A stretch of DNA of 64,000 bases from contig NC_052153.1 in assembly GCF_902713615.1 (NCBI RefSeq), forward strand, positions 191,060,826-191,124,825. The letters run 5' to 3'. Under the pieces are notes generated by a model. The model had not been told where the DNA came from, ran no database searches, and saw nothing but the letters and a program-made list of their open reading frames with translations. Source of the DNA: Scyliorhinus canicula. Taxonomy: Eukaryota. The translations under genes were made by a program, and so were the position numbers. Below, one piece after another: positions 18,852 to 52,094 of the stretch. The stretch's first letter is position 1; every line of letters begins with the position of its first letter.

Positions 18852-19879
18852 CTGAGATCAAAGAGGATAGACAAGCAGTTAAAGCAGTTGAATCATGGAG
18901 CAGCCCGTCTTTCGCGCAGACTAGAAAGAGGAAAGTATAAAAATGATACTTCTGTCCCACTTCGAATCCAGGCTGGCGCAGTACTGAGGGCGTGCTGCAC
19001 TGTTGGCGGTGCCACCTATCCAACCAGACGTTAAACCCTGCCAGCCTTCTTGGACAGACTAAAGAATCTCACTCCACCATTTTGAAGAGCGGGCAAGTTC
19101 TTCCTGCTCCACGTGTCCTCAAATCAACACCACCCAAAGAGATTGTCTGACCATGACCTGATTTCCGGGATATTGCTGTGCGTGAATTGGCTGCCGTGCT
19201 GTCCGACAGCAGCGGCTACATTTCAGACATCAATGGCTGGAAAAGAGAATCTTAAGCGGGAGGCAGAGGGAATGCCAGAGTACAAGGTCCGAAGTGTGAG
19301 ACATGGCGCCAAAATGGTTCCCAGGAAGGAGCACAGGAAAAGCCCAAGGCTCTTCAGCCCCTCTAGCCCATTCTATTAACCAACTAGATCATTGCTGGTT
19401 TTACGTTTTAACTCCCCCTACCAACCTAGGTCCCATAAACTTTAACAGCATTGTGTTAATGACAGAACAGTACACAAGAGGCTGGCCACTGGAGGGTTTG
19501 GTGCAGGTGTGTTGTACAATGTCAGATAGTGAAGGATAGAATTGGAGCCAATCTTTGTACACTTTTATTAGCGGTTATGAACCGTGGTTATATGGTCTCT
19601 ATACGCCTCATTTAGCTCCAGTGGAAGGTTGCCTTTACAAAGGAACTATGCCACATTTGAAAGAGGCACAACTAAGTTCAAAATATTATTGTTAAAGGTA
19701 TCCAATTGAATTTAGGTGATATGTCCTGGGTTCAACCCCTGTCCTCCTGGTGAAAGCCTCAGGTGACCAGTGGACACCAATTGCTCCATCTCCAGGGACA
19801 CCCAGGTTGAGGAAATGGGTGGTGCTCCATCAGCACAATGTCAGAAGGGGCTGTCGACAATACCACCCCGGCATATTTT

Positions 19880-21205: not shown

Positions 21206-21404
21206 TGTAACAACTGGCATTTACTGAGCGCCATCAATGTAGTAAAACATCTTCATAGTGTAGCGCGTCACAAGAAGGTCACAAGAGCAAGAGAGAGACA
21301 ACTTTTTCACCCGTCGGTCAAACTCTGGGCTGTTTTAACTCTCTCCACTATCCCCCCCCCCCCCCCCCCCCATACCCAGCAATTTAGAATCATGTTTAAT
21401 TTAC

Positions 21405-21800
21405 CTGTTATTTTCAGGATGATTCCAGGGTTGGTTTCCTTCATGTAAGGAGATAATCCCTGACGTTTGACCTCCACCCGGCAGAAGTACTGACTGGTGT
21501 CCTCCAACGTGGCACTTCTCAGCTCTAACGAAGCATCACTTTGCCTGGGGTCCCCGGCCAGTCTGTAACGGCCGTTGACGTTTGAGTGGACCACATTCTC
21601 AAATCCCTCTTCGTTTATGGCTCTGCTCGTCACGTTGAAGAGAACTGGCCCTCTATAGAACTCCTTCACCTTCCAAATAACGGTAATCTTAAAGGTGGTG
21701 TACCCCGTATAGGGGGAGGTGAAATTGCAAGGCAAAACAACAGGGCTTCCGACTGTTCCATTCACCATCCGCGGCACTTCCACGGACACTCCCTCACCTC
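21405..21800 (-). CDS. SIGLEC15: SIGLEC15-like exon: V-set Ig domain (396 nt, phase 1-1)
   Basis: Acceptor attgctgtAG and donor GTAAAT at 21404. Reads VVLPCNFTSP..VIWK..YRGPVLF..RYRLAGDPRQSDASLEL..YFCRVEV, matching the Siglec-15 pattern (LPCTFTHP..RFRLLGNPRRNDLSL..YFCRVEF) as recalled. Confidence 0.88.
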
Positions 21801-22724
21801 CTACAGCAATTCCAAGAGGCAAAGTGTCAATAAATTGCATGTCTAATGGCCCCTCACACAAATAACATCACTCTGGTTTCCCCAAGAGACCCAGAAGGAG
21901 GCCAAAATTCCCTAACACTGGTTCTCCTTAGAGAAGAGAAGATTGAGAGGTGACTTTCTCGAGGTGTTCAATCATGAGGGGTCTGTACAGAGTAGACAGG
22001 GAGTAACTGTTCCCATTGGTGGAAGGGTTAAGGACCAGACGAACCTCGTCGGCGACTGGGGGCTGGCGATGAGGGCCGGCGAAGGAGGTGTGGACCAGGG
22101 CTTGAGAGGCCATGACTGGAGGGCAACCTGGAGGGGGTTATACCTTAGTGGGAGGATGTGGGCCCAGGGGGCCAAATAAGGAGGGATTCTCTCCCCTCCC
22201 GCCCCCAAACCACCACCAGCCTACGCAGGCCCAACCACCTGGCATGGGGTTCTCCCGGCACCAGTTAAAAGCCAGCGTGGCACTGGGATGAAGCCCTTAA
22301 GGGGGTAGAGGTGAGTACTAGTTACCCACTTAAGGGCCTCAATTGGCCCACTGCCAGGTGTGGCTGCCAGCTGCGATCTTATAGAATATTGCGGCAGCCT
22401 TACAGGGCTGACTGACCTAACCCAGCTCCTATTTCTGATGTTCCTGTGCAGGCAAACATGTGAACGCAGCTGGGAAAGTCCCCCAGACTCCAGCAGACAC
22501 GTGATAAAAACCTGGGCAGTTTACTTTACGGATAACTTCAATTCCATTGAATTCTCACAAATGTTCTCAGGGTTTTTAAATGCTCTAATTTTAACCTCTC
22601 GGAAACCACACGGAGGGCGGAGTTTTAATGTAATTGGTGGGCGAACCAAAGGCAACAGGAGGAAATGTATTTCTAACACAGAGAGGATCTGGAATGCATT
22701 GAGAGGGTGGTGGAGCAGGGGCGG

Positions 22725-23009: not shown

Positions 23010-26000
23010 TGTTTTCTAGAGCTGTTGGGGAGGGTTTAAACTAATGTGGCAGGGGGATGGGAACCAATGCAGGAAGTTGGAAGGTAGTAAAACAGGGACA
23101 GAAACAAAAGGAAGTAAGGGGAAAAGTGCAAGGCAGAGAAGACATAGTCAGAAATCCATAAGGGCGACAGTACAAGGTACAGTGACTGAGGGGAGCACAG
23201 TGAATAGGCCCAGTAATAACAAAAGGAATAAAACTGGAGATGTTAAGATTCAAAACAGAGGTTAAAAAAACCAACATAAGTGTACTTTACCTGAATGCTC
23301 GTAGTATTCGGAATAAAGTAAATGAGTTGGTGGCACAAATCATCGTGAATGACTATGATTTAGTGGCCATTACTGAAACATGGTTAAAGGATGGTCACGA
23401 CTGGGAGTTAAATATCCGAGGGTATCAAACTATTCGGAAGGACAGAGTGGATGGTAAAGGAGGTGGTGTTGCTCTGTTATTTAAGGATGACATCCGGGCA
23501 ATAGTAAGGGATGACATCGGTGCTATGGAGGATAAGGTTGAATCCATTTGGGTGGAAATCAGGAATAGTAAGGCGAAAAAGTCACTGATAGGAGTAGTCT
23601 ATCGGCCACCAAGGGGATGGGACGTTTCGGCGTGGCCAGTTCGGCGTGGCCGATTCGGCGGAGGAGTTTTTCGGCGGAGGGACGGAAATTTATTTAAAAA
23701 TCTATGCTAGCGCTTCCCATTGAGAGTCATAGGCATAGATTTTTAAATAAATTTAAAACCCCCTAAATTTCAGCGGCCGGAGAGGGAAGCTACTCTCTCA
23801 CTGAAGCAATCAGCGGCCGCTGAAATTGACACTGCTGGCTGCTCTCTCCCTCCAATCCAACTTTTAAGTTTTAATGTTTCTGATTGGAGGGAGAGAGCAG
23901 CGGGCAGTGTCAATTTCAGCGGCCGGCTGATTATTTCAGTGAGAGCAGCTTCCCTCTCCGGATCAAAGTGAGCCGGCCGCTGAAATTGACACAACTGACA
24001 GTTGGGGTCCAAAAGCTCCCCCGCGGAGCACCAAACCGGGTCTGACTTTATACAGCCGGTGTTACTGAAGATATTGTGACTTTACACAACGTGTTAAGTC
24101 AGACAGCAGTGTAGATCACCGGGCAGCTGCTTCAATACTTTCAGTAACACCGGCTTTCTTTAAGAGTTTAATGTTGGTGCCTTTCTTTAAGAGACCCGGT
24201 TTGGTGCACAAACACGATATCTGAGGCGGCTGGAAGGAAAAGATACAAGAAATGGGCTGCACAAACATTTTGCGACTATAACTAATTTGACGCCGAAACG
24301 TCCCTCCGCCAAAAAATTCCTCCGTCGAATCGGCTACGCCGAACTGGCCACGCCGAATCAGCCACGCCGAACTGGCCATGCCGAAACGTACCAAACCCGG
24401 CCACCAAATAGTAACGTTATGGTGGGGCAGGCAATAAACAAAGAAATAACTGATGCATGTCGAAATGGTACAGCAGTTATCATGGGGGATTTTAATCTAC
24501 ATGTCGATTGGTTTAACCAGGTCGGTCAAGGCAACCTTGAGGAGGAGTTTATAGAATGTATCCGCGATAGTTTCCTAGAACAGTATGTAATGGAACCTAC
24601 GAGGGAACAAGCGGTCCTAGATCTTGTCCTGTGTAATGAGACAGGATTGATTCATGATCTCATAGTTAGGGATCCTCTCGGAAGGAGCGATCACAATATG
24701 GTGGAATTTAAAATACAGATGGAGGGTGAGAAAGTAAAATCAAATACTAGTGTTTTGTGTTTAAACAAAGGAGATTACAAGGGGATGAGAGAAGAACTAG
24801 CTAAGGTAGACTGGGAGCTAAGACTTTATGGTGGAACAGTTGAGGAACAGTGGAGAACCTTCCAAGCAATTTTTCACAGTGCTCAGCAAAGGTTTATACC
24901 AACAAAAAGGAAGGACGGAAGAAAGAGGGAAAATCGACCGTGGATATCTAAGGAAATAAGGGAGAGTATCAAATTGAAGGAAAAAGCATATAAAGTGGCA
25001 AAGATTGCTGGGAGATTAGAGGACTGGGAAATCTTTAGGGGGCAACAGAAAGCTACTAAAAAAGCTATAAAGAAGAGTAAGATAGAGTATGAGAGTAAAC
25101 TTGCTCAGAATATAAAAACAGACAGTAAAAGTTTTTACAAATATATAAGACAAAAAAGAGTGACTAAGGTAAACATTGGTCCTTTAGAGGATGAGAAGGG
25201 AGTTTTAATAATGGGAAATGAGGAAATGGCTGAGGAACTGAACAGGTTTTTTGGGTCGGTCTTCACAGTGGAAGACACAAATAACATGCCAGCGACTGAT
25301 AGAAACGAGGCTATGACAGGTGAGGACCTTGAGAGGATTGTTATCACTAAGGAGGGAGTGATGGGCAAGCTAATGGGGCTAAAGGTAGACAAGTCTCCTG
25401 GCCCTGATGGAATGCATCCCAGAGTGCTAAAAGAGATGGCTAGGGAAATTGCAGATGCACTAGTGATAATTTACCGAAATTCACTAGACTCTGGGGTGGT
25501 CCTGGTGGATTGGAAATTAGCAAACGTGACGCCACTGTTTAAAAAAGGAGGTAGGCAGAAAGCAGGAAATTATAGGCCAGTGAGCTTAACTTCGGTAATA
25601 GGGAAGATGCTGGAATCTATCATCAAGGAAGAAATAGCGAGGCATCTGGATAGAAATTGTCCCATTGGGCAGACGCAGCATGGGTTCGTAAAAGGCAGGT
25701 CATGCCTAACTAATTTAGTGGAATTTTTTGAGGACATTACCAGTGCAGTAGATAACGGGGAGCTGATGGATGTGGTATATCTGGATTTCCAGAAAGCCTT
25801 TGACAAGGTGCCACACAAAAGGTTGCTGCATAAGATAAAGATGCATGGCATTAAGGGTAAAGTAGTAGCATGGATAGAGGATTGGTTAATTAATAGAAAG
25901 CAAAGAGTTGGGATAAATGGGTGTTTCTCTGGTTGGCAATCAGTAGCTAGTGGTGTCCCTCAGGGATCCGTGTTGGGCCCACAATTGTTCACAATTTACA

Positions 26001-26972
26001 TAGATGATTTGGAGTTGGGGACCAAGGGCAATGTGTCCAAGTTTGCAGATGACACTAAGATGAGTGGTAAAGCGAAAAGTGCAGAGGATACTGGAAGTCT
26101 GCAGAGGGATTTGGATAGGTTAAGTGAATGGGCTAGGGTCTGGCAGATGGAATACAATGTTGACAAATGTGAGGTTATCCATTTTGGTAGGAATAACAGC
26201 AAACGGGATTATTATTTAAACGATAAAATATTAAAGCATGCCGCTGTTCAGAGAGACTTGGGTGTGCTAGTGCATGAGTCACAGAAGGTTGGTTTACAAG
26301 TGCAACAGGTGATTAAGAAGGCAAATGGAATTTTGTCCTTCATTGCTAGAGGGATGGAGTTTAAGACTAGGGAGGTTATGTTGCAATTGTATAAGGTGTT
26401 AGTGCGGCCACACCTGGAGTATTGTGTTCAGTTTTGGTCTCCTTACTTGAGAAAGGACGTACTGGCGCTGGAGGGTGTGCAGAGGAGATTCACTAGGTTA
26501 ATCCCAGAGCTGAAGGGATTGGATTATGAGGAGAGGTTGAGTAGACTGGGACTGTACTCGTTGGAATTTAGAAGGATGAGGGGGGATCTTATAGAAACAT
26601 TTAAAATTATGAAGGGAATAGATAGGATAGATGCGGGCAGGTTGTTTCCACTGGCGGGTGACAGCAGAACTAGGGGACATAGCCTCAAAATAAGGGGAAG
26701 TAGATTTAGGACTGAATTTAGGAGGAACTTCTTCACCCAAAGGGTTGTGAATCTATGGAATTCCTTGCCCAGTGAAGCAGTTGAGGCTCCTTCATTACAT
26801 GTTTTTAAGGTAAAGATAGATAGTTTTTTGAAGAATAAAGGGATTAAGGGTTATGGTGTTCGGGCCGGAAAGTGGAGCTGAGTCCACAAAAGATCAGCCA
26901 TGATCTAATTGAATGGCGGAGCAGGCTCGAGGGGCCAGATGGCCTACTTCTGCTCCTAGTTCTTATGTTCTT
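23010..26972 (+). mobile_element. CR1 LINE, 5'-truncated; ORF2 (EN+RT) broken only by a MITE
   Basis: EN motifs NARSI, TETW, GDFN, RSDH; RT motifs [12 protein letters not shown]. ORFs 23240-23710 and 24287-26881 share one frame; (ttctt)-type tail. Confidence 0.95.
23613..24398. mobile_element. Foldback MITE, Mutator-like
   Basis: 9-bp TSD ggccaccaa (23604-23612 and 24399-24407); imperfect TIRs of about 70-95 bp built from ttcggcgtggcc repeats; several internal inverted repeats. Confidence 0.85.
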
Positions 26973-36664: not shown

Positions 36665-38692
36665 TAGTATGTACCTGTTAGGCAGGGAGGAAGTGGTCGA
36701 GCGAGGGAACCATGGGTTACTAAAGCAGTTGAAACACTTGTAAAGAGGAAGAAGGAGGCTTATGTAAAGATGAGACGTGATGGTTCAGTTAGGGCGCTTG
36801 AGAGTTACAAGTTAGCTAGGAAGGCTCTAAAGAGAGAACTAAGAAGAGCCAGGCGAGGACATGAGAAGTCTTTGGCAAGTAGGATCAAGGATAACCCTAA
36901 AGCTTTCTAAAGATATGTCAGGAATAAAAGAATGACTTGGATAAGAGTAGGGCCAGTCAAGGACAATAGTGAGAAGTTGTGCGTGGAGTCGAGGAGATAG
37001 GAGAGGTGCTAAATGATTATTTTTCGTCTGTATTCACACAGGAAAAAGACAAAGTTGTCGAGGAGAATACTGAGATACAGGCTACTAGACTAGAAGGGCT
37101 TGAGGTTCATAAGGAGGAGGTGTTAGCGATTCTGGAAAGTGTGAAAATAGATAAGTCCCCTGGGCCGGATGGGATTTATCCTAGGATTCTCTGGGAAGCT
37201 AGGGAGGAGATTGCTGAGCCTTTGACTTTGATCTTTAAGTCATCTTAGTCTACAGGAATAGTGCCAGAAGACTGGAAGATAGCAAATGTTGTCCCATTGT
37301 TCAAGAAGGGGAGTAGAGATAACCCCGGTAACTATAGGCCAGTGAGCCTTACTTCTGTTGTGGGAAAAGTCTTGGAAAGGTTTATAAGAGATAGGATGTA
37401 TAATCATCTGGAAAGGAATAATTTGATTAGAGATAGTCAACATGATTTTGTGAAGGTAGGTCGTGCCTCACAAACCTCACTGAGTTCTTCGAGAAGGTGA
37501 CCAAACAGGTGGATGAGGGGAAAGCAGTTGATGTGGTGTATATGGATTTCAGTAAAGCGTTTGATCGGGTTCCCCACGGTAGGCTATTTCAGAAAATACA
37601 GAGGCATGGGATTCAGGATGATTTAGCAGTTTGGATAAGAAATTGGCTAGCTGATAGAAGACAAAGGGTGGTGGTTGATGGGGAATGTTCTGACTGGTGT
37701 CCAGTTACTAGTGGTGTACCACAAGGATCTGTTTTGGGGCCGCTGTTGTTTGTCATTTTTATAAATGACCTGGAGGAGGGCGCAGAAGGATGGGTGAGTA
37801 ACTTTGCAGATGACACTAAAGTCGGTGGAGTTGTGGACAGTGCAGAAGGATGTTACAAGTTACAGAGGGACATAGATAAGCTGCAGAGCTGGGCTGACAG
37901 GTGGCAAATGGAGTTTAATGCAGAAAATTGTGATGTGATTAATTTTGGAAGGAATAACAGGAAGACAGAGTACTGGGCTAATGGTAAGATGCTTGGTAGT
38001 GTGGACGAGCAGAGAGATCTCGGTGTCCCTGTCCATAGATCCCTGAAAGTTGCCACCCAGGTTGAGAGGGTTGTTAAGAAAGCGTATGGTGTGTTAGCTT
38101 TTATTGATAGAGGAATTGAGTTTCGGAGCCATGAGGTCATGTTGCAGTTGTACAAAACTCTGGTGCGGCCGCATTTGGAGTATTGTGTGCAGTTCTGGTC
38201 GCCACATTATAGGAAGGATGTGGAAGCATTGGAAAGGGTACAGAGGAGATTTACAAGGATGTTGCCTGGTATGGAGGGAAGATCGTATGAGGAAAAGCTG
38301 AGGGACTTGAGGCTGTTTTCGTTAGAGAGAAGAAGGTTAAGAGATGACTTAATTGAGGCATACAAGATGATCAGAGGATTAGATAGAGTGGACATTGAGA
38401 GCCTTTTTCCTCGGATGGTGATGTCCAGCACGAGGGGACATAGCTTTAAATTGAGGGGAGATAGATATAGGACAGATGTCAGAGGTAGGTTCTTTACTCA
38501 GAGAGTAGTAAGGGCGTGCAATGCCCTGCCTGCAACAGTAGTGGACTCGCCAACACTAAACGCATTCAAATGGTCATTGGATAGGCATATGGACGATAAG
38601 GGAATAGTGTAGAGGGACTTTAGAAGGGTTTCACAGGACGGTGCGATATCGAGGGCCGAAGGGCATGTATTGTGCTGTAATGTTCTATATTC
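36665..38692 (+). mobile_element. CR1 LINE, 5'-truncated, ORF2 with stops and frameshifts
   Basis: RT fragments 36979-37248, 37261-37500 and 37497-38612; same family as 46390-49935. Confidence 0.93.
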
Positions 38693-38908
38693 TAGTACAG
38701 TTCAAAAGAGAAAATCATGTATTCCATCGCAGCTCACATATTGGTGTCTTATGCATCCCCACCCCCTACAAATAGGAGGACAACGTAAATCACTTTAAGA
38801 CCCACTCAGAAACAGTATTCACTTTGCACCCAAACGAAGCTCACATGGCCAGGCAAAGGGAACATTAATTCAGAGCAAATAATTAAAAATTCTGTCTGGC
38901 CCCCTAAT

Positions 38909-39123
38909 AGACAAGATGTTTCCCCAGTAGCTCAGGTACAGAAAGGAAGCTGTGGGGAGCACACGGGCTCTTATACCCCGCCTTACAGGGCGGAGCTACC
39001 TTACAGCTCTAACCAATGGGTGACTAGTGTCACATATCATTGGGCCAATGTGCAGCGAGGCTTCTCCACCAATGGTGTCTCGGCATTGCTAGTTACCGTA
39101 ATGCCTCTAGTCATACTACCACA
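38909..39123 (-). repeat. Gypsy 3' LTR (last about 59 bp missing)
   Basis: Starts TGTGGTAGTATGA at 39123; 7 substitutions and 1 indel versus 45964-46177 over 215 bp. Confidence 0.92.
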
Positions 39124-39344
39124 TCCACCCCCTGTTGAAAACAGAATCCGGCGGGGGGGGGGGGGGGGGCGGGGGCGGCTTGGTCGCCCGACCATAACTG
39201 GTGGTCCGCACGGGTTGAATAGCATAACTGGTAGTATGACTAGTGTTGAGGTACTGCGCTACTCTCGTACTGCGTCTGCCCACTGGCCCATAACTATTAA
39301 CTATTTATAATACAGTTTCGCAATTTCACAATTGGCCATGTACA

Positions 39345-39715
39345 TAGAACATAGAACATAGAACAGTACAGCACAGAACAGGCCCTTCAGCCCTCAATGT
39401 TGTGCCGAGCCATGATCACCCTACTCAAACCCACGTATCCACCCTATACCCGTAACCCAACAACCCCCCCCTTAACCTTACTTTTTATTAGGACACTATG
39501 GGCAATTTAGCATGGCCAATCCACCTAACCCGCACATCTTTGGCCTGTGGGAGGAAACCGGAGCACCCGGAGAAAACCCACGCACACAGGGGGAGGACGT
39601 GCAGACTCCACACAGACAGTGACCCAGCCGGGAACCGAACCTGGGACCCTGGAGCTGTGAAGCATTTATGCTAACCACCATGCTACCCTGCTGCCCCCTG
39701 CTACCCTGCTGCCCC
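39345..39715 (-). mobile_element. V-SINE inserted in the Gypsy 3' untranslated region
   Basis: Minus-strand head, V core and (ttctatg)n tail. Confidence 0.9.
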
Positions 39716-39745
39716 CAATGTCACATTAAAAGGTCTATATACAGT

Positions 39746-40045
39746 TCACAGCGACACAATCAGGCGGTCGGGGGCCTTGGTCGTCCTTTGCGATCGATGG
39801 AGCTTCGGCGGAGACGTCGGTGGAGGTGCCGGCGTCTGTGACTCCGGGAGCGTGGATCCAGTCCCCGTAGCGGCTTCAACACCCCTAGATGGCGCTGGTG
39901 AGGGTGGCCAACCAGGGGACGGGGCGTCCAGACCTCTAGATGGCGCTGGTGAGGGTGGCCAACCAGGGGACGGGGCGTCCAGACCACTAGATGGCGCTGG
40001 TGGGGAGGTTGACTGACCTGTGAAGGAAGCGTCTGTAGAGTGCCG

Positions 40046-40079
<34 letters not shown>

Positions 40080-43000
40080 GAGGGGGGGGGGGGGGGGTGG
40101 TCCAGGCAGGGCCGGTGGGAAAAACGGTTGTCCAGGACAGGGGGCGACAGTGAGGTGCGCCAGTGAGGGGGAGGGTGGGGCTGGTGGCGAGGGTGAGGGA
40201 GGGGATCCGGCGGGCGCCAGGTCCCGTAGGGAGGCCGTGTCCTGTCGGCCGTCGGGGTATCCACGTACACGTACTGCGGGTTAGCATGGAGTAGATGGAC
40301 CCTCTGGACCAACGGGTCCGACTTGTGCGCCCGCACGTGTTTCCGGAGCAGGATGGGCCCTGGGACTGCCAGCCAGGTCAGGAGCGAGGTCCCTGAGGAG
40401 GACTTCCTAGGGAAGACAAGGAGATGTTCATGAGGTGTTTGGTTAGTTGCAGTGCAGAGCAGGGACCAGATGGAGTGGAGGGCGTCTGGGATAACCTCCT
40501 GCCAGGGGGGACCGGGAGATTCCTGGACCGTAGGGCCAGTAGGACGGTCTCCCAGTCCGTTCTGTTCTCCCTCTCGAACTGTCCGTTACCCCCGGGGTTG
40601 TAACTGGTCGTCCTGCTGGAGGCGATGCCCCTGCTGAGCAGGAATTGACGTAGTTCGTCACTCATAAAGGAGGACCCCCTATCGCTGTGAATGTAGGCGG
40701 GGGATCCGAACAGGGAAAAAATGCTGTGGAGGGCTTTGATGATGGTGGTTGTGGTCATGTCGGGGCAGGGGATAGCGAACGGGAAGCGGGAGTACTCGTC
40801 AATCATGTTGAGGAAGTACGTGTTGCGGTTGGTAGAGGGGAGGGGACCTTTGAAGTCCATGCTGAGGCGTTCAAAGGGACGGTAGAAGTACGGCTTGCAC
40901 TCTGCGCAGATGTGGCATTCCCTAGTTACTGTCCTGACCTCCTCGATGGAGTAGGGCAGGTTGCGGGTCTTTACGAAATGGAAAAAACGAGTGACCCCCC
41001 GGGTGGCAGAGGTCCTCGTGAAGGGCTCGGAGGCGGTCCACTTGTGCTTTGGCACAGGTGCCACGGGACAGGGCATCAGGAGGCTCGTTTAGCTTCCCAG
41101 GACGATACAAGATATCGTAGTTATAGGTGGATAATTTGATCCTCCACCGCAAGATCTTATCGTTCTTTATCTCGCCCCGCTGTGCATTGTCGAACATGAA
41201 AGCCATTGACCGTTGGTCTGTGAGGAGGGTAAACCTCCTGCCGGCCAGGTAGTGCCTCCAGTGTCACACAGCTTCTACTATGGCCTGGGCTGCCTTCTCG
41301 ACCGAGGAGTAGCGGATTTCGGAAGCATGGAGGGTGCGTGAGCAGAAGGTCACGGGTCTGCCCGCTTGGTTGAGGGTGGCCACCAGAGCTCTCGACTTGG
41401 AAGGGGAGGGACTCATCGATGGCGCGTATCGTGGCCTTTGCAATGTCTGCTTTGATGCGGCTGAAGGCCTGATGTGCCTCCGTCGACAGGGGGAAAGTAG
41501 TTGCTTGGATGAGGGGACGGGCTTTGTCGGCGTAGTTGGGGACCCACTGAGCTTAGTAAGAGAAGAACCCGAGGCAGCGCTTCAGGGCCTTGGAGCAGTG
41601 AGGGAGGGGGAACTCCATAAGGGGGCGCATGCGTTCCGGGTCGGGGCCTATCACTCCATTTTGCACTACGTAGCCGAGGATGGCTAGGTGGTCGGTGCTA
41701 AACACGCATTTATCCTTGTTATACGTTAGGTTCAGGAGTTTTGCAGTCTGGAGGAATTTGCGGAGGTTGGCGTCGTGATCCTGCTGATCGTGGCCGCAGA
41801 TGGTGACATTATCGAGATACGGGAATGTTGCCCGTAAACCGTATCGGTCGACCATTCGGTCTATCTCTTGCTGGAAGACCAAGACCCCGTTTGTGACACC
41901 GAAGGGAACCCTTAAGAAGTGGTAGAGTCGCCCATCTGCCTCGAACGCAGTGTACTTGCGATCACTCACACGGATAGAGAGCTGGTGGTAGGCGGACTTT
42001 AAGTCTACCGTGGAGAAGACCTTGTACTGCGCGGTCCTGTTGACCAGGTCGGATATACCGGGGTGGGTGGGGTACGCATCCAGTTGCGTAAACCTGTTGA
42101 TGGTCTGGCTGTAGTCGATGACCATCCTGTTCTTGTCCCCGGTCTTTACCACCACAACTTGAGCTCTCCAGGGGCTGTTGCTGGCCTCTATGACCCCTTC
42201 CCTCAGAGGCCACTGGACCTCGGACCTGATGAACGTCCGGTCCTGGGCGCTGTACCGTCTGCTCCTAGTGGCGACGGGTTTGCAATCCGGAGTGAGGTTT
42301 GCAATCAGGGAGGGGGGGTCGACCTTTAGGGTCGCGAGGCTGCAGACAGTGAGGGGGGTATAGGGCCACTGAATTTAAACGTTAGACTCTGAAGATTGCA
42401 TTGAAAATCCAACACTAGGAGTGTGGCCGTGCAGAGGTGGCGGAGGAGATAGAGCCTGTAATTCTTGAACTCCCTTACCTGGACCATGAGGTTTGCTACT
42501 CAATACCCTTTCATTTCAACTGAATGGGAGCCAGAGGCCAGGAAGATTTTTTGATCGACGGGGTGGACAGGAAGAGAACAGCGCCTTACCGTCTCAGGGA
42601 GTATGAAGCTCTCCGTGCTCTCAGAGTCGAGCAGACAGGACCAATACCATCGTCGTCGCTGTGGAAAGAGTGCGGGGTCGAAACTGGTTCAGGGTCACCG
42701 ATGCCAACCGTGGCAGGAGTTCAGAATCATCATCGGGCGGTGTGTGGTCACCCGTGCTGGGGACCTTGGAGCCGTTCCAAGATGGTGGCGCCCACTGATC
42801 GCACATGGCTGAGGGTGGAGAAAATGGCGGCGCCCATCCCCCGCATGTGACGTCGGTAGAGTATGATGGCGGCGTCCAGAGGCCCCACGTGGCGCTGGGG
42901 AAGGAAGCTGGCGATGTTCGTGGGCCGCACGGGGCCCGTGGAGAGAGTTGGAGCAGCGATCCGAACTCGCCGCCCGGGACCGCAGCGACTGCCCAGCCAT

Positions 43001-43173
43001 GGCAGACCGCCATGAAATGGCCCTTTTTGCCGCACCCCTTACACATTGCCGAACGGGCTGGGCAGCGCTGTCGGGGGTGTTTCGCCTGTCCGCAGAAATA
43101 ACAACGGGGCCCAGCGGGGTTGCCGGGGCGTCTCGCAGCGCAGGCCTGAGGCGATTCAGAGTCCGCTGAGGGG
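39746..43173 (-). pseudogene. Gypsy gag C-terminal half and pol (PR, RT, RNase H, IN), multiply frameshifted
   Basis: CYFCGQAKHPRQRC and CKGCGKKGHFMAVC; LLDSESTESFI; FSTVDLKSAYHQL..PFG..YLDN; MDFKGPLP..HSDRGSSF..ERENRT. Confidence 0.9.
39884..40005. repeat. 51-bp tandem repeat (about 2.3 copies) in the Gypsy pol C-terminal tail
   Basis: ctagatggcgctggtgagggtggccaaccaggggacggggcgtccagacc repeated; encodes a 17-aa Pro/Ser unit. Confidence 0.9.
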
Positions 43174-43684
43174 CAGGGCCGGCTCAAGGTACCGGCAACT
43201 CGGGCAGTCGCCCGGGGCGCCATGTGCTAGGGGGCGCTAGGAACCCTTTACAAATGTTCAGTCATTGCTGGTACAGTGAGATTTCTTTAGTGACTTTTGA
43301 TCAAGTCCTCAACGGGAAGGGAAGACGCATATTTGCTTTGATGTCTGCCGAGAGAGTGAAGCAAGCCCGGTTCTACATTTGGGTTCACATATGGAGGGGG
43401 GGGGGGGGGGATTGGTAAACACAACCAGCGGGCCTGCTGCTGGGGCCACAGGGCTGCCCCGCCGCCTATAAATGTCAATAACGTCTTGTTAGAATCAAAT
43501 ACCTGCAGCACTCCACCACCTCTTAGATCAAAGCAAATCACTGAGGATGCCGGAGACAGAGACAATCCCCCCCTCCCATCCCCCCACCCCACCCCACCCA
43601 GAACAGACAGAACAATCTCAGCAGGTCTGACAGCCTCTGTGGAGACAGAGATCTGCAGATGGCGATGGGATTAGCTTTGTATTT

Positions 43685-43863
43685 GAAATGAAAATCGCTT
43701 ATTGTCACGAGTAGGCTTCAATGAAGTTACTGTGAAAAGCCCCTAGTCGCCACATTCCGGCGCCTGTCCGGGAAGGCTGGTACGGGAATCGAACCGTGCT
43801 GCTGGCCTGCCTTGGTCTGCTTTAAAAGCCAGCGATTTAGCCGAGTGAGCTAAACCAGCCCCT
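43685..43863 (-). mobile_element. tRNA-derived SINE family B inside the hAT cargo
   Basis: Full head and tail on the minus strand. Confidence 0.88.
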
Positions 43864-44065
43864 CCACCACCACCCTCCACCAGAATTTGCAATTCTGCTT
43901 CCCGTTCACTGGATGAAGAATGATCCAGACTCCAAACCTTAGCTCCGAGGTTCTCTCTCCACTTCGTGTGACCACCCATGAAAAAAAAGTTGAGTTCCAG
44001 TCGCCTGAATCAACAGAAAATTCCGTTTTGTCATTGGGAGGAGAAGGTAACAATGTTGTCAACTT

Positions 44066-44202
44066 TCAGCCTCTCTCTCTCTCTCTCCTCTCTCTCTCCT
44101 CTTTCTCAGTGCCCAGTAGTGACATCATCAGGCAGTGTTAATAAGGTGGGGTGTGCGGGCAGAGTCTGTCCTCAGGTACTCCCAACCCTCCACTGGACAA
44201 CA
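44066..44202 (+). promoter_or_regulatory. CFTR proximal promoter / 5' UTR
   Basis: Pyrimidine tract about 44069-44108; variant CRE TGACATCA 44120-44127; GT/GC box ggtggggtgtgcggg about 44145-44159; no TATA box. Confidence 0.65.
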
Positions 44203-44255
44203 ATGCAGAGATCACCCATTGAAAAAGCCAATGCCTTCTCCAAACTCTTCTTCAG
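44203..44255 (+). CDS. CFTR: CFTR coding exon 1 (MQRSPIEKANAFSKLFF + AG, 53 nt, phase 2)
   Basis: ATGCAGAGATCACCCATTGAAAAAGCCAATGCCTTCTCCAAACTCTTCTTCAG|gtaag. Matches the CFTR N-terminus as recalled (human MQRSPLEKASVVSKLFFS, dogfish MQRSPIEKANAFSKLFFR), with the same 53-nt coding length and phase. Confidence 0.93.
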
Positions 44256-45295
44256 GTAAGCTCCTTCCGCATTCCGAGCCACCCCTCTCTTCCTCTCTCT
44301 CTCTCTATCTCACTCCTCTTGTTCTCACCGCAGGGAGGGGGTGAAATGAATCGTTCCCACACTTTTCCCGGAATCACTGCAGGGTTGGTATTGATTAACC
44401 TGCCCCTTGCTCACAGTCCCGCACGCCCAGCCTGAAATGCCACGGCCATGTCCATTTCACACGAGCGGCGTTGCTGCACTTCGGGCATTTCAAGGTCCAG
44501 GGCAACGACTCCCACCAAGTGGCAACTGACCTCACCCCGGTCTTGCTGTTTGCCAATCAGCTCCCTAACTCGCCGGAGAAACCAGAGCTTCACCGGAGCG
44601 CCGGCAGCGCTTCAGCTGTCTGTCCTTTGAAGTCTCAAAACTCTTGCGAAACTTTGCTCCAACTTTTTTTTCCCCCCTTGACCACACGCCTGAGACCGTT
44701 TGACGGTGCAGAGGCCAACAATCACGAGTTCGCTTCAGACGTCCTTTTGCAGCCGCGAAAAGGGAAAAGTCTGACATCTGGTTAAAGTTACTGAATGTGC
44801 AGCACATGCATCTGAGGGAGAAAGTTTCGCGGATTGTCGCTCGGGTGATTCAGAAACATTTCATTTGTTATCAATTGGACAGCGTTCGGGTCCTGTCCTG
44901 ACCTTCATGGTATGTTTTGAGGGGCAGACAGATTTTGTTTTTTAAATGAGAGACAGGTTAGTTGTGTACACAGTGAATTGAAGATTGGTCCTGGACAGAA
45001 TATAGAAACGAAACAATTTCTACCCATTAAAAGCTGTGAGGCGAAATGAGAACTATTTGCCAAATGGCTATGGGGTGACTCGTGTGTCCAGCAGTGGGTC
45101 CGGGAAGCGGTTTGTGTTACTGTACAGAGTGGCTGAGCTGTGAACGCCGCCAAGTTGTATTGTAACTGCTGAATTTTGAAACTCTTTATTCTACATTTTC
45201 AGTTTTTCTCCTTGTGAAAATTTTTTAAAATTATACTTGTAAGGGCGCCGAAGTTCAGCTTGCCCGGGGCGCCAGCAACCCTAGGGCCGGCGCTG

Positions 45296-45880
45296 CTGAG
45301 AGGGAATTCCACGCTGCCCAGAGGGGCCGCGCGCGGTCGGGGGGGGGGGCGTAAGCGTGGGCATTTCGGGAGGCCACGTCCAGTGAGTCGGTGAGGGCCC
45401 GTGCCTCCTTGAGGCCCAGAGTGTCTTTCTCAAGCAGTCTCTGGCGGATTTGTGGGGACTGCATACCCGCAACAAAAGCGTCCCGAAACAATAGTTCAGT
45501 ATGTCCGTTAGCCGAAACTTGTGGGCAGCTGCAGTTCCTCCCTAGCACGAGGAGCGCACGATAGAATCGTCTAGTGACTCACCAGGGCTCTGCCACCTCG
45601 TTGCCAGTAGGTGCCGGACGTAGACTTGGTTTACTGGGCGGATATAATGTCCTTTGAGTAGATCCATTGCGGAATCGTAGTCCGTAGCGTCCTCGATGAG
45701 TGTGTAGATGTCCAGGCCCACTCTCGAGTGCAAGATCTGTAGTTTCTGCTCCCTCGTAGGTGTGCTTTCTGCCGTGCCAAGGTAGCCGTTGAAACATGCG
45801 AACCAGTGCATAAAGGTTGCTGCTGTGTTAGCCACGTGGATGCTGAGTTGTAGACACTCTGGCTTGATGCGGAGCTCCAT
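45296..45880 (-). pseudogene. Gypsy gag N-terminal half
   Basis: MELRIKPECL..QKLQILHSRVG..RDAFVAGMQSPQIRQRLLE; one frameshift near 45545. Confidence 0.85.
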
Positions 45881-45904
45881 CCTTTAAAATCTTGTCCATT
45901 AAAT

Positions 45905-46177
45905 TGATGCATTATCAATTGACCACAGAAGCGAGGTTGTTGTCCGAAACTGAAGGCTTTAAGAGACAAGATGTTTCCCCAGCAGCTCAGGTACAGAAAG
46001 GAAGCTGTGGGGAACACACGGGCTCTTATACCCCGCCTTACAGGGCGGAGCTACCTTACAGCTCTAACCAATGGGTGACTAGTGTTACATACCATTGGGC
46101 CAATGAGCAGCGAGCTTCTCCACCAATGGTATCTCGGCATTGCTAGTTACCGTAATACCTCTAGTCATACTACCACA
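45905..46177 (-). repeat. Gypsy 5' LTR (273 bp)
   Basis: TG..CA ends; minus-strand TATAAGA about 46024-46030; pairs with 38909-39123. Confidence 0.92.
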
Positions 46178-46389
46178 CCCCTCATCTTTGAGATTTACCT
46201 GCCATCATGAGAATCTGCACTTTGTCGTATTCATCAGACACGCCTCGCTGTAGCCCACTCTCTCCCCGATCGTCACACTGGCTCAGGTGCCAATGGCCAA
46301 GATCTTTGCAATTTGTCCACTTGGCGTGGACTGACTTAGATAACTGCTCCCGGATCCTGACCCCCCACGCTGCATTTAAACCTCTAAGT

Positions 46390-49300
46390 GATAGTTATAG
46401 GGGACTGCACAGTAAGGGGCACAGATAGGCGCCTCTGTGGATGTGAAAGAGACTCCAGTATGGTGTGTTGCCTTCCTGGTGCCAGGGTCAAGGATGTCTC
46501 TGAACGAACACAGGGCATCCTGAAGGGGGAGGGTGAACAGCCAGAGGTCACAACATATGCAGGAAGAGTGATGAGGTCCTGCAGAAGGAGTTTAGGGAGT
46601 TAGGCAGTAAGTTCAAAAGTAGGACCTCTAGGGTTGTAATCTCAGGATTACTCCCTGTGCCACGTGCCAGTGAGGTTAGAAATAGGAGGATAGAGCAGCT
46701 AAACACGTGGCTAAACTGGTGGTGTAGGAGGGAGGGTTTCAGATCTCTGGAACACTGGGATCTCTTCTGGGGCAGGTGCGACCCCAAGAAGGACGGGTTG
46801 CATCTAAACTGGAGGGACACTGATATCCTGGCTGGGAGGTTTGCTTGAGTCACTCGGGAGGATTTAAACTAGTCTGGCAGGGGGGTGGGTACCAGAGCGT
46901 TAGCTTAGAAGGTGGAATAACTGAAGGGGAAATAGAGAACAAAAATAAGAGAACAACAGGGGCAGGGGCATGGGAACCTGGATTTTAGTTTTGGGGTACG
47001 GGAGATTGAGAGTATAGAGGTCAGGAGCACAGATTTGACTTCGCAGGAGGGTGCCAGTGTTCAGGTAGGTGGTTTGAAGTGTGTCTACTTTAATGCCGGG
47101 AGTATACGAAATAAGGTAGGGGAACTGGCAGCATGGGTTGGTACCTGGGACTTCGATGTTGTCGCCATTTCAGAGACATGGATAGAGCAGGGACAGGAAT
47201 GGTTGTTGCAGGTTCCGGGGTTTAGGTGTTTTAGTAAGCTCAGAGAAGGGGGCAAAAGAGGGGGAGGTGTGGCGCTGCTAGTCAAGGACAGTATTACGGT
47301 GGCGGAAAGGATGCTAGATGGGCACTCTTCTTCCGAGGTAGTATGGGCTGAGGTTAGAAACAGGAAAGGAGAGGTCACCCTGTTGGGAGTTTTCTATAGG
47401 CCACCTAATAGTTCTAGGGATGTAGAGGAAAGGATGGCGAAGATGATTCTGGAAAAGAGCGAAAGTAACAGGGTAGTTGTTATGGGAGACTTTAACTTTC
47501 CAAATATTGACTGGAAAAGATATAGTTTGAGTACATTAGATGGGTCGTTCTTTGTACAATGTGTGCAGGAGGGTTTCCTGACACAATATGTTGACAGGCC
47601 AACAAGAGGCGAGGCCACATTGGATTTGGTTTTGGGTAATGAACCAGGCCAGGTGTTAGATCTGGAGGTAGGTGAGCACTTTGGAAACAGTGACCACAAT
47701 TCGGTGACCTTTACGTTAGTGATGGAAAGGGATAAGTATACCCCGCAGGGCAAGAGTTATAGCTGGGGGAAGGGCAATTATGATGCCATTAGACATGACT
47801 TAGGATGTGTATGCTGGAGAAGTAGGCTGCAAGGGTTGGGCACACTGGATATGTGGAGCTTGTTCAGGGAACAGCTATTGCATGTTCTTGATAAGTACGT
47901 ACCAGTCAGGCAGGGAGGAAGGGGTCGAGCGAGGGAACCATGGTTTACCAAAGAAGTGGAATCTCTTGTTAAGAGGAAGAAGGAGGCCTATGTGAAGATG
48001 AGGCGTGAAGTTTCAGTTGGGGTGCTTGATAGTTACAAGGAAGCGAGGAAGGATCTAAAGAGAGAGCTAAGACAAGCAAGGAGGGGACATGAGAAGTCTT
48101 TGGCAGGTAGGATCAAGGAAAACCCAAAAGCTTTCTATAGGTATGTCAGGAATAAAAGAATGACTAGGGTAAGAGTAGGGCCAGTCAAGGACAGTGGTGG
48201 GAAGTTGTGTGTGGAGGCTGAGGAGATAAGCGAGATACTAAATGAATACTTTTCGTCAGTATTCACTCAGGAAAAAGATAATATTGTGGAGGAGAATGCT
48301 GAGACCCAGGCTATTAGAATAGATGGCATTGAGGTGCGTAGGGAAGAAGTGTTGGCAATTCTGGAAAAGGTGAAAATAGATAAGTCTCCGGGGCCTGATG
48401 GGATTTATCCTAGGATTCTCTGGGAAGCCAGGGAAGAGATTGCTGAGCCTTTGGCTTTGATTTTTAGGTCATCATTGTCTACAGGAATAGTGCCAGAGGA
48501 CTGGAGGATAGCAAATGTGGTCCCTTTGTTCAAGAAGGGGAGTAGAGATAACCCCGGTAACTATAGGCCGGTGAGCCTAACATCTGTGGTGGGTAAAGTC
48601 TTGGAGAGGATTATAAAAGATACGATTTATAATCATCTAGATAGGAATAATATGATTAGGGATTGTCAGCATGGTTTTGTGAAGGGTAGGTCATGCCTCA
48701 CAAACCTTATCGAGTTCTTTGAGAAGGTGACTGAACAGGTAGACGAGGGTAGAGCAGTTGATGTGGTGTATATGGATTTTAGTAAAGCGTTTGATAAGGT
48801 TCCCCATGGTCGGCTATTGCAGAAAATACGGAGGCTGGGGATTGAGGGTGATTTAGAGATGTGGATCAGAAATTGGCTAGTTGAAAGAAGACAGAGAGTG
48901 GTAGTTGATGGGAAATGTTCAGAATGGAGTTCAGTTACGAGTGGCGTACCACAAGGATCTGTTCTGGGGCCGTTGCTGTTTGTCATTTTTATAAATGACC
49001 TAGAGGAGGGCGCAGAAGGATGGGTGAGTAAATTTGCAGACGACACTAAAGTCGGTGGAGTTGTAGACAGTGCGGAAGGATGTTGCAGGTTACAGAGGGA
49101 CATAGATAAGCTGCAGAGCTGGGCTGAGAGGTGGCAAATGGAGTTTAATGTGGAGAAGTGTGAGGTGATTCACTTTGGAAAGAATAACAGGAATGCGGAA
49201 TATTTGGCTAATGGTAAAATTCTTGGTAGTGTGGATGAGCAGAGGGATCTCGGTGTCCATGTACATAGATCCCTGAAAGTTGCCACCCAGGTTGATAGGG

Positions 49301-49935
49301 TTGTGAAGAAGGCCTATGGTGTGTTGGCCTTTATTGGTAGAGGGATTGAGTTCCGGAGCCATGAGGTCATGTTGCAGTTGTACAAAACTCTAGTACGGCC
49401 GCATTTGGAGTATTGCGTACAGTTCTGGTCGCCTCATTATAGGAAGGACGTGGAAGCTTTGGAACGGGTGCAGAGGAGATTTACCAGGATGTTGCCTGGT
49501 ATGGAGGGAAAATCTTATGAGGAAAGGCTGATGGACTTGAGGTTGTTTTCGTTAGAGAGAAGAAGGTTAAGAGGTGACTTAATAGAGGCATACAAAATGA
49601 TCAGAGGGTTAGATAGGGTGGACAGCGAGAGCCTTCTCCCGCGGATGGAGGTGGCTAGCACGAGGGGACATAGCCTTAAATTGAGGGGTAATAGATGTAG
49701 GACAGAGGTCAGAGGTGGGTTTTTTACGCAAAGAGTGGTGAGGCCGTGGAATGCCCTACCTGCAACAGTAGTGAACTCGCCAACATTGAGGGCATTTAAA
49801 AGTTTATTGGATAAGCATATGGATGATAAGGGCATAGTGTAGGTTAGATGGCCTTTAGTTTTTTTCCATGTCGGTGCAACATCGAGGGCCGAAGGGCCTG
49901 TACTGCGCTGTATCGTTCTATGTTCTATGTTCTAT
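46390..49935 (+). mobile_element. CR1 LINE: broken ORF1 C-terminus (SGNH-esterase-like) plus intact ORF2
   Basis: VIGDCTVRG..LPGARVKDV..DGLHLN; ORF2 at 47035-49842; (ttctatg)n tail. Confidence 0.95.
47035..49842 (+). CDS. CR1 ORF2p, APE endonuclease and reverse transcriptase, 935 codons uninterrupted (start codon uncertain)
   Basis: SETW, GDFN, NSDH; [27 protein letters not shown]. Confidence 0.93.
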   Translation: MTSQEGASVQVGGLKCVYFNAGSIRNKVGELAAWVGTWDFDVVAISETWIEQGQEWLLQVPGFRCFSKLREGGKRGGGVALLVKDSITVAERMLDGHSSSEVVWAEVRNRKGEVTLLGVFYRPPNSSRDVEERMAKMILEKSESNRVVVMGDFNFPNIDWKRYSLSTLDGSFFVQCVQEGFLTQYVDRPTRGEATLDLVLGNEPGQVLDLEVGEHFGNSDHNSVTFTLVMERDKYTPQGKSYSWGKGNYDAIRHDLGCVCWRSRLQGLGTLDMWSLFREQLLHVLDKYVPVRQGGRGRAREPWFTKEVESLVKRKKEAYVKMRREVSVGVLDSYKEARKDLKRELRQARRGHEKSLAGRIKENPKAFYRYVRNKRMTRVRVGPVKDSGGKLCVEAEEISEILNEYFSSVFTQEKDNIVEENAETQAIRIDGIEVRREEVLAILEKVKIDKSPGPDGIYPRILWEAREEIAEPLALIFRSSLSTGIVPEDWRIANVVPLFKKGSRDNPGNYRPVSLTSVVGKVLERIIKDTIYNHLDRNNMIRDCQHGFVKGRSCLTNLIEFFEKVTEQVDEGRAVDVVYMDFSKAFDKVPHGRLLQKIRRLGIEGDLEMWIRNWLVERRQRVVVDGKCSEWSSVTSGVPQGSVLGPLLFVIFINDLEEGAEGWVSKFADDTKVGGVVDSAEGCCRLQRDIDKLQSWAERWQMEFNVEKCEVIHFGKNNRNAEYLANGKILGSVDEQRDLGVHVHRSLKVATQVDRVVKKAYGVLAFIGRGIEFRSHEVMLQLYKTLVRPHLEYCVQFWSPHYRKDVEALERVQRRFTRMLPGMEGKSYEERLMDLRLFSLERRRLRGDLIEAYKMIRGLDRVDSESLLPRMEVASTRGHSLKLRGNRCRTEVRGGFFTQRVVRPWNALPATVVNSPTLRAFKSLLDKHMDDKGIV

Positions 49936-50019: not shown

Positions 50020-52090
50020 TAGAACACTTATCAGTACTTGGAATTACGATGCTGTGGCTATCACATAAACGTGGTGAAAGGAAGGGCAGGATTGGCAGCT
50101 GTACATTGGAGGAGACAGATGCTTCAGGAGAGATAGAGGGGGATGTAAAAAGGGTGGGGGAGTAGCATTGCTGGTTAAGGAGAATATTATAGCCGTACTG
50201 TGGGAGGAGACCTCGGAGGGTTCATACAATGAGGCAATCTGGGTAGAGTTTAGGAACAGGAAGGGGGCAATCACAATGTTGGGGGTTTGTTACAGACCCC
50301 CCAACTGCCAGCGAGAGATAGAGGAGCAGATAGGAAGAGAGATTTTGGATAGGTGCAAAAGTAACAGGGTTGTTGTGGTAGGAGATTTTAATTTCCCCGA
50401 TATTGACTGGGACTCACTTGGTGCCAGGGGATTGGATGGGGCAGGGTTTGGAATGTGTATGCACGAAGCCTTCTTGATGGAATATGTCGATAGTCCAACG
50501 AGGGAATGGGGCAGTACTGGACCTGGTATTGGGGAATGAGCCTGGATAGGTGGTTGAGGTTTCAGTAGGGGAACATTTTGGGAGTAGTGACCACAATTCT
50601 GTAGGTTTTAGGGTACTTTTGGATAGGGATGAGGGTAACCCTCACATTAACGTGCTAAACTAGGGAAAGGCAAATTCCGATAACATTAGACAGGAATTGA
50701 AGAATTTGGATTGGGTACGCCTGCTGGAGGGTAAATCAACATCGGACATGTGGGAGTCTTTCAAGCGACAGTTGATTAGGATTCAGGAAAGTCACGTTCC
50801 TGAGAGAACAAAGGATAGCTATGGGAAGTTTAGGGTGCCTTGGAGAACGAGGGATATTGTGAACCTCGTCAAAAAGAAACAGGAGACTGTTGTACGGGTC
50901 TAGCAGGGTGGGGACAGTCGAAACCCTTGAGGAATAGAAAAAAAGTAGGAAGGTACCGAAGCGGAATATTAGGGGGGCTCGGAGGGGTCATGAAAAGTCC
51001 TTGGCTAGGAGGATTAAGGTGAATCCCAAAGCTTTTTATTCATATGTAAAAAAGGACAAGGAATCTATGTGTTGAGCCAGAGGAAATTGGCAAGGTACTA
51101 AATGAATACTTTGCATCAGTGTTCATCAAAGAAAGGGACTTTGTGGAAGATTCTTGGGTAGGGTGTATGGACAGTCTGGATCATGTTAACATCAAAAAGG
51201 AGGAGGTATTGGGCCTTTTAAAAGATATTAAGGTTGATGCACAATCAATGGACACGAAACGTAGATGAAGTCCGAACGATAGGCTTTAATGCACAAGAAG
51301 TGTACCCGGCAGCAGACGTACAGAAGAAAGGCCGACTGCCGGGAAGCACGGGTTCTTATATCCCGCCTCGTAGGCGGAGCTACCTACCTCTCAGCCAATC
51401 GGCTGAGAGGCACATGACTTACCCGGGCCAATGGGCAGCAGGTCCTCTGCACCAATAGCAGCTCACTTCCAGGTACCGTAATACCCCTAGTCATACTACC
51501 ACAAAGGTAGATAAGTCTCCTGGGCCGGGTGGGATTTACCCCAGAATACTGAGAGAAGCAAGGGGGGAAATTGCTGGGGCCTTGACTGACATCTTTGTAT
51601 CCTCATTGGCTACAGGTGAGATCCCAGAGGACTGGAGAATAGCTAATGTGGTGCCGCTGTTTAGCAGGGATAATCTTCGAAACTATAGGCAGGTGAGCCT
51701 CACGTCGGTAGTTGGTAAATCTCCTCGGGGACAGGATTATACACATTTGGAAACAAATGGACTCATTAGCGATAGACAGCATTGTTTTGTGAAGGGGAGG
51801 TCGTGCCTCACTAACATGATTGAGTTTTTTGAGGAGGTGACAAAGATGATTGATGAGGGGAGGGTGGTGGATGTTGTTTACATGGACTTCAGTAAAGCCT
51901 TTGTCAAGGTGCCTCATGGTAGACTGGTACAAAAGGTGAAGTCACACGGGATCAGAGGTGAGGTGGCAAGGTGGATACAGAACTGGCTCGGTCACAGAAG
52001 GCAAAGGGTAGCAGTAGAAGGGTGTTTTTCTGAATGGGAGGTTGAGACTAGTGGTGTTCCACACGGCTCTGGGCTGGGGCCTCTGTTGTT
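50020..52090 (+). mobile_element. Degraded CR1 ORF2 with a solo-LTR insertion
   Basis: Fragmented EN (YRPPNCQRE..GDFN) and RT (DFSKAFVKVPHG). Confidence 0.85.
51235..51503 (-). mobile_element. Gypsy solo LTR, related to but distinct from the 45905 LTR
   Basis: tgatgc...tcatactaccaca ends; 5-bp TSD aaggt (51230-51234 and 51504-51508). Confidence 0.88.
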
Positions 52091-52094
52091 GTTT

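Follow-up and report, generated by a model that had tools for sequence, protein, structure and literature searches.

A probable Pack-hAT element carrying a CFTR promoter and first exon within a Gypsy retrotransposon of the shark Scyliorhinus canicula

Animal DNA transposons that hold fragments of host genes between their terminal inverted repeats (TIRs) are known as Pack-TIRs, of which 370 have been reported in 100 genomes; 208 of these are of the hAT type, and four are multicopy, three in frogs and one in an alligator (PMC8277862). The element considered here occupies positions 43174-45295 of a 64,000-nt stretch of the shark Scyliorhinus canicula (contig NC_052153.1, positions 191,060,826 to 191,124,825, forward strand), which is referred to in full as the window, and between its two hAT-type ends lie a promoter, first exon and splice donor of CFTR. 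Host-gene-derived sequence between the two ends of one TIR element is what distinguishes a Pack-TIR (PMC8277862), and such sequence is present at this locus. The element is read here, with a probability of about 0.68, as a non-autonomous hAT-type Pack-hAT with a host-derived interior and as one decayed member of a multi-copy family. A preliminary description of the window had regarded Pack-type capture as rarely documented in vertebrates, which the numbers above reveal to be overstated, though only four cases are multicopy.

Several described systems resemble this element in part. Pack-hAT-N8_XT of Xenopus tropicalis, which carries CAPSL's 5′ untranslated region (UTR), is likewise a non-autonomous hAT element with 5′ sequence of a host gene, an 8-bp target site duplication (TSD) and several copies, and it too lacks a transposase (Tan et al. 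2021, PMC8277862). Its cargo measures 291 bp (PMC8277862), compared with about 2 kb in the shark element. Unlike Pack-hAT-N8_XT, the shark element has a complete module of promoter, first coding exon and donor and is probably chimeric. Its host also differs, being a cartilaginous fish, and the word “shark” is absent from the main text of PMC8277862. Multicopy Pack-TIRs are rare in animals, and none among the cases considered here from that paper has a whole promoter, exon and donor module.

A similar type of cargo is found in the HelibatN3 Helitrons of vespertilionid bats, which bring along the promoter of NUBPL with six codons and a splice donor and have been shown to act as a mobile exon trap (PMC4778049). 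In these elements, as in the shark element, the cargo consists of a promoter, a few N-terminal codons and a donor. However, HelibatN3 depends on rolling-circle read-through (PMC4778049), whereas cut-and-paste transposition with repair-based capture would apply to the shark element. HelibatN3 is also present in thousands of copies in bats, as against perhaps tens for the shark element, for which no chimeric transcript was seen. Rice Pack-MULEs and plant Pack-TYPE elements share with the shark element their TIR ends, their often chimeric host gene fragments and, presumably, a transposase supplied in trans, but Pack-MULEs are Mutator elements with a TSD of 9-11 bp and a plant host, while the shark element is a hAT with an 8-bp TSD in an animal. 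A literature search yielded no publication that describes an element of this type in sharks or one with CFTR as its cargo.

A hAT-type insertion in a resident Gypsy element

The element is 2,122 bp long, starting with CAGGGCCGGC and ending with GCCGGCGCTG. The TIRs of hAT elements typically begin with (C/T)A(G/A)NG, and the termini fit this rule at both ends: the left end opens with CAGGG and the right end, read as its reverse complement, with CAGCG. When the left end is aligned to the reverse complement of the right end, 9 of the terminal 10 positions match, and an imperfect TIR can be followed by pairing out to about 50 nt. The element is flanked by the 8-mers CTGAGGGG and CTGAGAGG, which are identical at 7 of 8 positions; at a fixed offset, the chance of at least 7/8 identity is about 4e-4. 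Compared with nTnnnnAn, which is a preference rather than a rule, the expected T is present at position 2, and position 7 is G in both copies.

The insertion lies in gag of a degenerate Gypsy-type element on the minus strand (Table 1), and the reading frames to either side reflect this. As judged from the coordinates of the open reading frames (ORFs), a codon begins at 45296 in one of the gag ORFs flanking the element and at 43166 in the other. Both coordinates fall on the same letter of the duplicated 8-mer, and removal of the element together with one 8-mer would thus leave the frame intact. The gag is already broken by a stop or frameshift near 45545. Comparison with sequencing runs, here designated X1 to X26, was made through Logan contigs, and the depths given for them are word depths. 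Contigs joining 43165 directly to 45304 occur in X1 (n = 4), X14 (n = 1) and X15 (n = 1); the joint skips 2,138 nt, corresponding to the element and both 8-mers, and the intervening letters listed include one 17-letter case. These contigs indicate that related Gypsy copies are uninterrupted where the Gypsy of the window is split. The segment represents a hAT-type insertion, and the Gypsy element that received it is older and was already resident. The two long terminal repeats (LTRs) of this Gypsy have about 9-10 differences, including one indel, over about 221 nt (about 4%). Within the 3′ part of the same Gypsy, at 39872-40110, three tandem units of 51 nt are followed by a G-run of about 80 nt, with a GC content of up to 0.71 and strong G skew.

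The hAT ends belong to a large, abundant family. In X1, the bins containing them have depths of about 54,000 and about 19,000, compared with 47-52 in the interior. In X3, depth rises from 98 to 733 at about 45173, and contigs that share the sequence from 45179 onward have other letters before it; loose contig ends before 45179 are found in both X3 and X16. From these depth jumps and loose ends, the cargo extends over approximately 43238-45178. On the left, the unique contigs of all four runs set in at 43208-43211, and on the right they extend as far as 45265, which shows that the interior is joined to the same hAT subterminal sequence in every run.

No transposase domain was detected by Pfam in any interior ORF, nor any other domain above threshold. 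A homologous-protein search with a 104-aa interior ORF found no match, as did an Rfam search of 43100-45400, and blastn within the 64-kb window returned self-matches only, with no further copies of both ends or of the interior. The preliminary description had proposed hAT-type ends with an 8-bp duplication bearing one mismatch around the 2,122 bp, a gag that is continuous once the segment is deleted, and a DNA transposon that arrived after the Gypsy element. The first and last of these agree with the termini, the TSD, the TIR and the empty-site contigs, and the continuity of gag is confirmed locally. Its count of 8 LTR differences in 215 positions roughly matches the divergence given above, and the lack of a transposase holds.

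The CFTR module and its other copies

The coding part of the first exon encodes MQRSPIEKANAFSKLFFR and is directly followed by a gtaag donor. In a search of the PDB, this peptide matched CFTR chains only, all aligned from residue 1, and chicken CFTR was the best of them with 16 of 18 residues identical (E 0.01). Since the only matches are CFTR N-termini aligned from residue 1, the cargo exon is that of CFTR, as the preliminary description had stated on the strength of its ATG, frame and donor. The layout is identical to that of native CFTR exon 1, namely an ATG, 53 coding nt, a split codon and a GT donor. Unlike the native exon, the shark copy lies between hAT ends within a Gypsy gag, gives multicopy signals and has decaying sister copies, and the window contains no exon 2, ASZ1 or CTTNBP2. 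For exon 2, this agrees with the earlier description and refers to a motif scan only, in which no CFTR exon-2-like motif was found in the six frames of the 64-kb window. Upstream of the exon, the motif TGACATCA at 44121-44128 resembles the cAMP response element (CRE) of human CFTR. A CFTR promoter, exon 1 and donor module is carried between hAT ends without a transposase. Under the preferred explanation, the cargo would comprise no less than 0.7 kb from upstream of CFTR, together with the 5′ UTR, the 53-nt coding exon 1 and the GT donor.

Contigs of X14, X15, X16 and X4 connect the sequence after exon 1 with a block near the right end of the cargo, and in X3 the depth over 44262-45178 is 97, compared with about 60 upstream. 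In this block, the minus-strand ORF 44905-45153 resembles MAD2L1BP (p31comet). It matches the Pfam family p31comet (PF06581) with E 0.005 and 16.5 bits, where the curated cutoff is 24.1, and in the PDB it matches MAD2L1-binding protein only (E 0.023 and 0.056); the alignment pairs residues 25-71 of the query with residues 32-78 of the chain. After correction for the ten ORFs tested, the significance is about 0.05. For this fragment, a representative library gave low-complexity matches only and Atlas gave no usable match. Judged by these similarities, the cargo is probably chimeric, with a MAD2L1BP coding fragment on the strand opposite CFTR exon 1. A piece of MAD2L1BP 0.7 kb past CFTR exon 1, if real, is typical of a Pack-type element and unlike CFTR intron 1. 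The frame of the fragment is lost past the match, near an A-run at about 44935-44945, and at about 44911/44910 the minus strand reads AAG|gtcagg, a possible donor. Run X26 (organism D, a more distant relative) has contigs that are 93% identical over 44432-45150, with ordinary depths of 5.7-8.2 and no match listed over the CFTR exon; past 45150, close to the border of the cargo, one of them goes on for another 203 nt that do not resemble the window. This contig may represent a parental locus.

The cargo contigs differ from the window at 28 of 1,354 positions in X1 and at 24 of 1,229 in X3, or about 2%. In each run, no more than about half of the 31-mers of the window are present, which is the share expected for about 2% of private differences. 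Cargo depth is 47-50 in X1 and 58-98 in X3, whereas single Gypsy-variant contigs have depths of 3.4-4.8 and a minor variant of the exon region has 4.2, so that the cargo is about 10-25 times as deep as single Gypsy-variant contigs. A second line of evidence is independent of this baseline. In X3, the interval 44161-44226 occurs in two versions with depths of 62.9 and 4.2 (a ratio of up to 15:1), and at 44227 an A is found on two distinct contigs (36.6) with G making up the remaining 11.5 of 48.1. These variants indicate at least three haplotypes of exon 1, in unequal ratios, in one individual. Furthermore, three versions exist under one species label: a consensus seen in X1 and X3, the contig of X16, and the window itself.

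The copy in the window departs from the others in two larger features. A tRNA-derived short interspersed element (SINE) lies 320 bp upstream of the ATG in this copy alone; the SINE belongs to an extremely abundant family, with word depths in the millions in all runs, and cargo contigs of X1 and X4 bypass it through a joint from 43662 to 43885. In addition, this copy has lost about 309 bp from a point 188 bp upstream of the ATG. Between 44014 and 44016, the contig of X16 includes 309 further letters; in X3 these two positions are marked by loose ends, and the contigs of X1 and X15 diverge from the window there. When the SINE (210) is subtracted from 2,122 and the missing segment (about 309) is added, the consensus length would be about 2,220-2,230, give or take small indels. 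Neither the SINE, nor this deletion, nor the probable MAD2L1BP fragment had been noted in the preliminary description.

Two non-conservative changes affect the exon: through 44227 G>A, most copies have Thr in place of Ala9, and through 44246 T>C, the X16 copy has Pro in place of Leu15. The RNA-labelled X16 sequence also has a 20-nt deletion at 44501, a 9-nt deletion and substitutions of its own. Both residues are conserved in the chicken and human CFTR chains, and the window's copy keeps the ancestral peptide. From these changes at conserved residues, the exon copies are free of constraint. The copy in the window is, as part of the reading favored here, probably an old and decaying member of the family and not a working CFTR first exon.

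Split RNA reads from 44255 had been suggested as a sign of use. Among those listed in the Logan contigs, no joint or loose end falls at 44255, but the tissues are unspecified and this is weak evidence. At the donor, the RNA-labelled contigs of X15 and X16 continue without splicing, and the raw RNA run X22 has zero reads on the exon, which is again weak evidence from an unspecified tissue. It is doubtful, on the present analysis, that the family acts as a mobile cassette of promoter, first exon and donor that is still firing, with sense copies in or near genes driving chimeric transcripts with a CFTR leader. If the cassette does fire, CFTR-like regulation, as in salt-secreting epithelia, would be spread to new shark genes, and the family would parallel the HelibatN3 exon trap of bats by cut-and-paste means.

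Origin of the copies

In the proposed sequence of events, an abundant hAT element resembling a miniature inverted-repeat transposable element (MITE) would have taken up host fragments through template switching or gap repair, and an autonomous hAT transposase acting in trans would have mobilized the cargo-bearing element to several loci. One such insertion would have hit the gag of the resident Gypsy, generating the 8-bp duplication, after which this copy would have decayed. The preliminary description had offered a dispersing Pack-hAT family as one of two options, and depth, more than two haplotypes in one individual and the decaying exon copies favor it. Several points weigh on the other side. 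Copy number is based on Logan word depths, which are not a copy number, and in X14 (organism C) the cargo, at a depth of 5-9, is no deeper than a flanking Gypsy piece that is 99% identical (7.55). No other copy was seen with its flanks, as contigs break in the high-copy hAT ends, and distinct TSDs are the hallmark of repeated transposition. The match to p31comet is under the Pfam cutoff and drew no support from the representative library or Atlas. The parental CFTR and MAD2L1BP loci lie outside the window, so that the direction and the unity of the capture are inferred; the 4.2-deep contig of the exon-region variant in X3 and the 93%-identical contigs of organism D are no more than candidates for a parental copy unlinked to a transposable element.

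The X14 depths also bear on the main rival, in which the cargo-bearing hAT inserted once and the copies arose through retrotransposition of the Gypsy with its passenger or segmental duplication of the composite. The Gypsy piece in question (43053-43164) has about the depth of the cargo, as amplification of both together would predict, and the LTR-LTR divergence of about 4% is twice the copy-to-consensus distance of about 2%, as expected from one shared event. An LTR divergence of about 2% per lineage and a copy about 2% from the consensus fit the nesting, but do not separate hAT transposition from composite amplification, which is what makes the latter the main rival. However, the hAT ends are part of a huge mobile family, a Gypsy with disrupted gag and 2 kb of foreign DNA would need mobilization in trans, and many Gypsy contigs show the empty site; this course of events is accordingly considered unlikely. 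A single event in place, in which a break in a resident hAT MITE was repaired by copying the CFTR 5′ region so that only the window's copy and its parent exist, is in keeping with most animal Pack-TIRs being single-copy and formed by transposition-independent gap filling (PMC8277862), and the word depths could mislead. Yet it would have to accommodate at least three haplotypes of unequal depth in one individual, cargo contigs that enter hAT subterminal sequence in every run (from 43208 on the left and up to 45265 on the right), and contigs set apart from the window by the SINE and by an indel of 309 nt, and it is held to be distinctly improbable.

The other option of the preliminary description was that the working CFTR first exon had been moved locally, with its promoter, as a composite hAT transposon. 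The retained ATG, frame, conserved Ala9 and strong donor of the window's copy are compatible with this, and since the window has 19 kb downstream and introns in sharks can be longer than that, the missing exon 2 is weak evidence against it. Nevertheless, relocation of the functional 5′ end is very unlikely because of the multicopy signals, the private SINE and promoter-proximal loss of about 309 bp, and the probable foreign fragment 0.7 kb downstream on the other strand; the unspliced contigs of X15 and X16 and the lack of exon reads in X22 also count against it, as do the surroundings. CFTR has conserved neighbors, ASZ1 upstream and CTTNBP2 downstream, and a functional exon would be expected in that setting as a single copy; what was found is a set of multicopy signals and, within 64 kb, transposable elements and Ig-domain exons only. 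Finally, a hAT/CFTR contig could have been joined into the Gypsy by the assembly, as both junctions lie in high-copy sequence and no spanning read was seen. A misjoin would not, however, yield an 8-bp direct repeat exactly where related Gypsy copies are continuous, with the gag frames in register, and an artifact of this kind is extremely improbable.

If confirmed, the Pack-hAT family would offer a clear case, in a vertebrate, of a tissue-specific promoter and a spliceable first exon being dispersed by a DNA transposon. Such a family would, in addition, give rise to false CFTR 5′ ends in gene annotation, while knowledge of CFTR itself would be unchanged.

Features and surroundings in the window

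Table 1. Coordinates of the element, its host and other features of the 64-kb window
Feature	Position	Strand	Basis
Left TSD copy, 8 bp, CTGAGGGG	43166-43173	none	7/8 match to 45296-45303
5′ hAT end: TIR and subterminal sequence common to a very abundant family	43174-43237	+	TIR alignment, contig depth
Distal upstream cargo; continuous with the promoter part in SINE-less copies	43238-43680	+	one contig per run, 43208-43645, about 1-2% from the window
tRNA-derived SINE, in the window's copy alone	43681-43884	-	tRNA-like head 43771-43861; depth
CFTR-type promoter-proximal region and 5′ UTR	43885-44202	+	lacks about 309 nt at 44015 present in other copies
CFTR exon 1 coding part: ATG, 17 codons and 2 nt, intact	44203-44255	+	sequence, ORFs, PDB search
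Splice donor gtaagc	44256-44261	+	direct reading of sequence
Cargo downstream of exon 1, then MAD2L1BP-like block; source border between about 44260 and about 44430	44262-45178	+	contigs
Probable captured MAD2L1BP (p31comet) coding fragment, human residues about 32-78	44941-45081	-	Pfam, PDB
3′ hAT end, common to cargo-less relatives, ends GCCGGCGCTG	45179-45295	+	depth jump, loose contig ends, TIR
Right TSD copy, 8 bp, CTGAGAGG	45296-45303	none	direct reading of sequence
Host Gypsy-type LTR retrotransposon, degenerate	38905-46180	-	LTRs, integrase, reverse transcriptase, gag with zinc knuckles
Gypsy LTRs	38905-39126 and 45960-46180	-	direct repeats
Gypsy integrase	40378-41076	-	domain match
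Gypsy reverse transcriptase	41553-42155	-	domain match
Gypsy gag with zinc knuckles	45880 down to about 42621	-	ORFs/domains
Endogenous retrovirus (ERV)-type integrase ORF: integrase core and MLV-type integrase C-terminal domain	1359-2501	+	domain match
Exons with Ig V-set and I-set domains; Siglec-like gene or another member of the Ig superfamily	21307-21861 and 18454-19023	-	domain match
Long interspersed element (LINE) ORFs	24287-26881 and 47035-49842		ORF domains

The window consists mostly of transposable elements. The Ig-domain exons, about 22 kb from the element, are the sole coding sequence found in it that does not belong to a transposable element; the earlier assignment of this neighbor to a Siglec gene holds only as far as the Ig domains. 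The retrovirus-like element at 1359-2501 is unrelated to the Gypsy at 38.9-46.2 kb. LINE copies with endonuclease and reverse transcriptase at 36666-38694 and 47894-49927 (plus strand) are 86-88% identical, and a weaker copy lies at 51060-52094. The first two have the same orientation and a constant offset of about 11,229 nt and bracket the Gypsy element; they may have inserted independently or stem from an old duplication of the local sequence.

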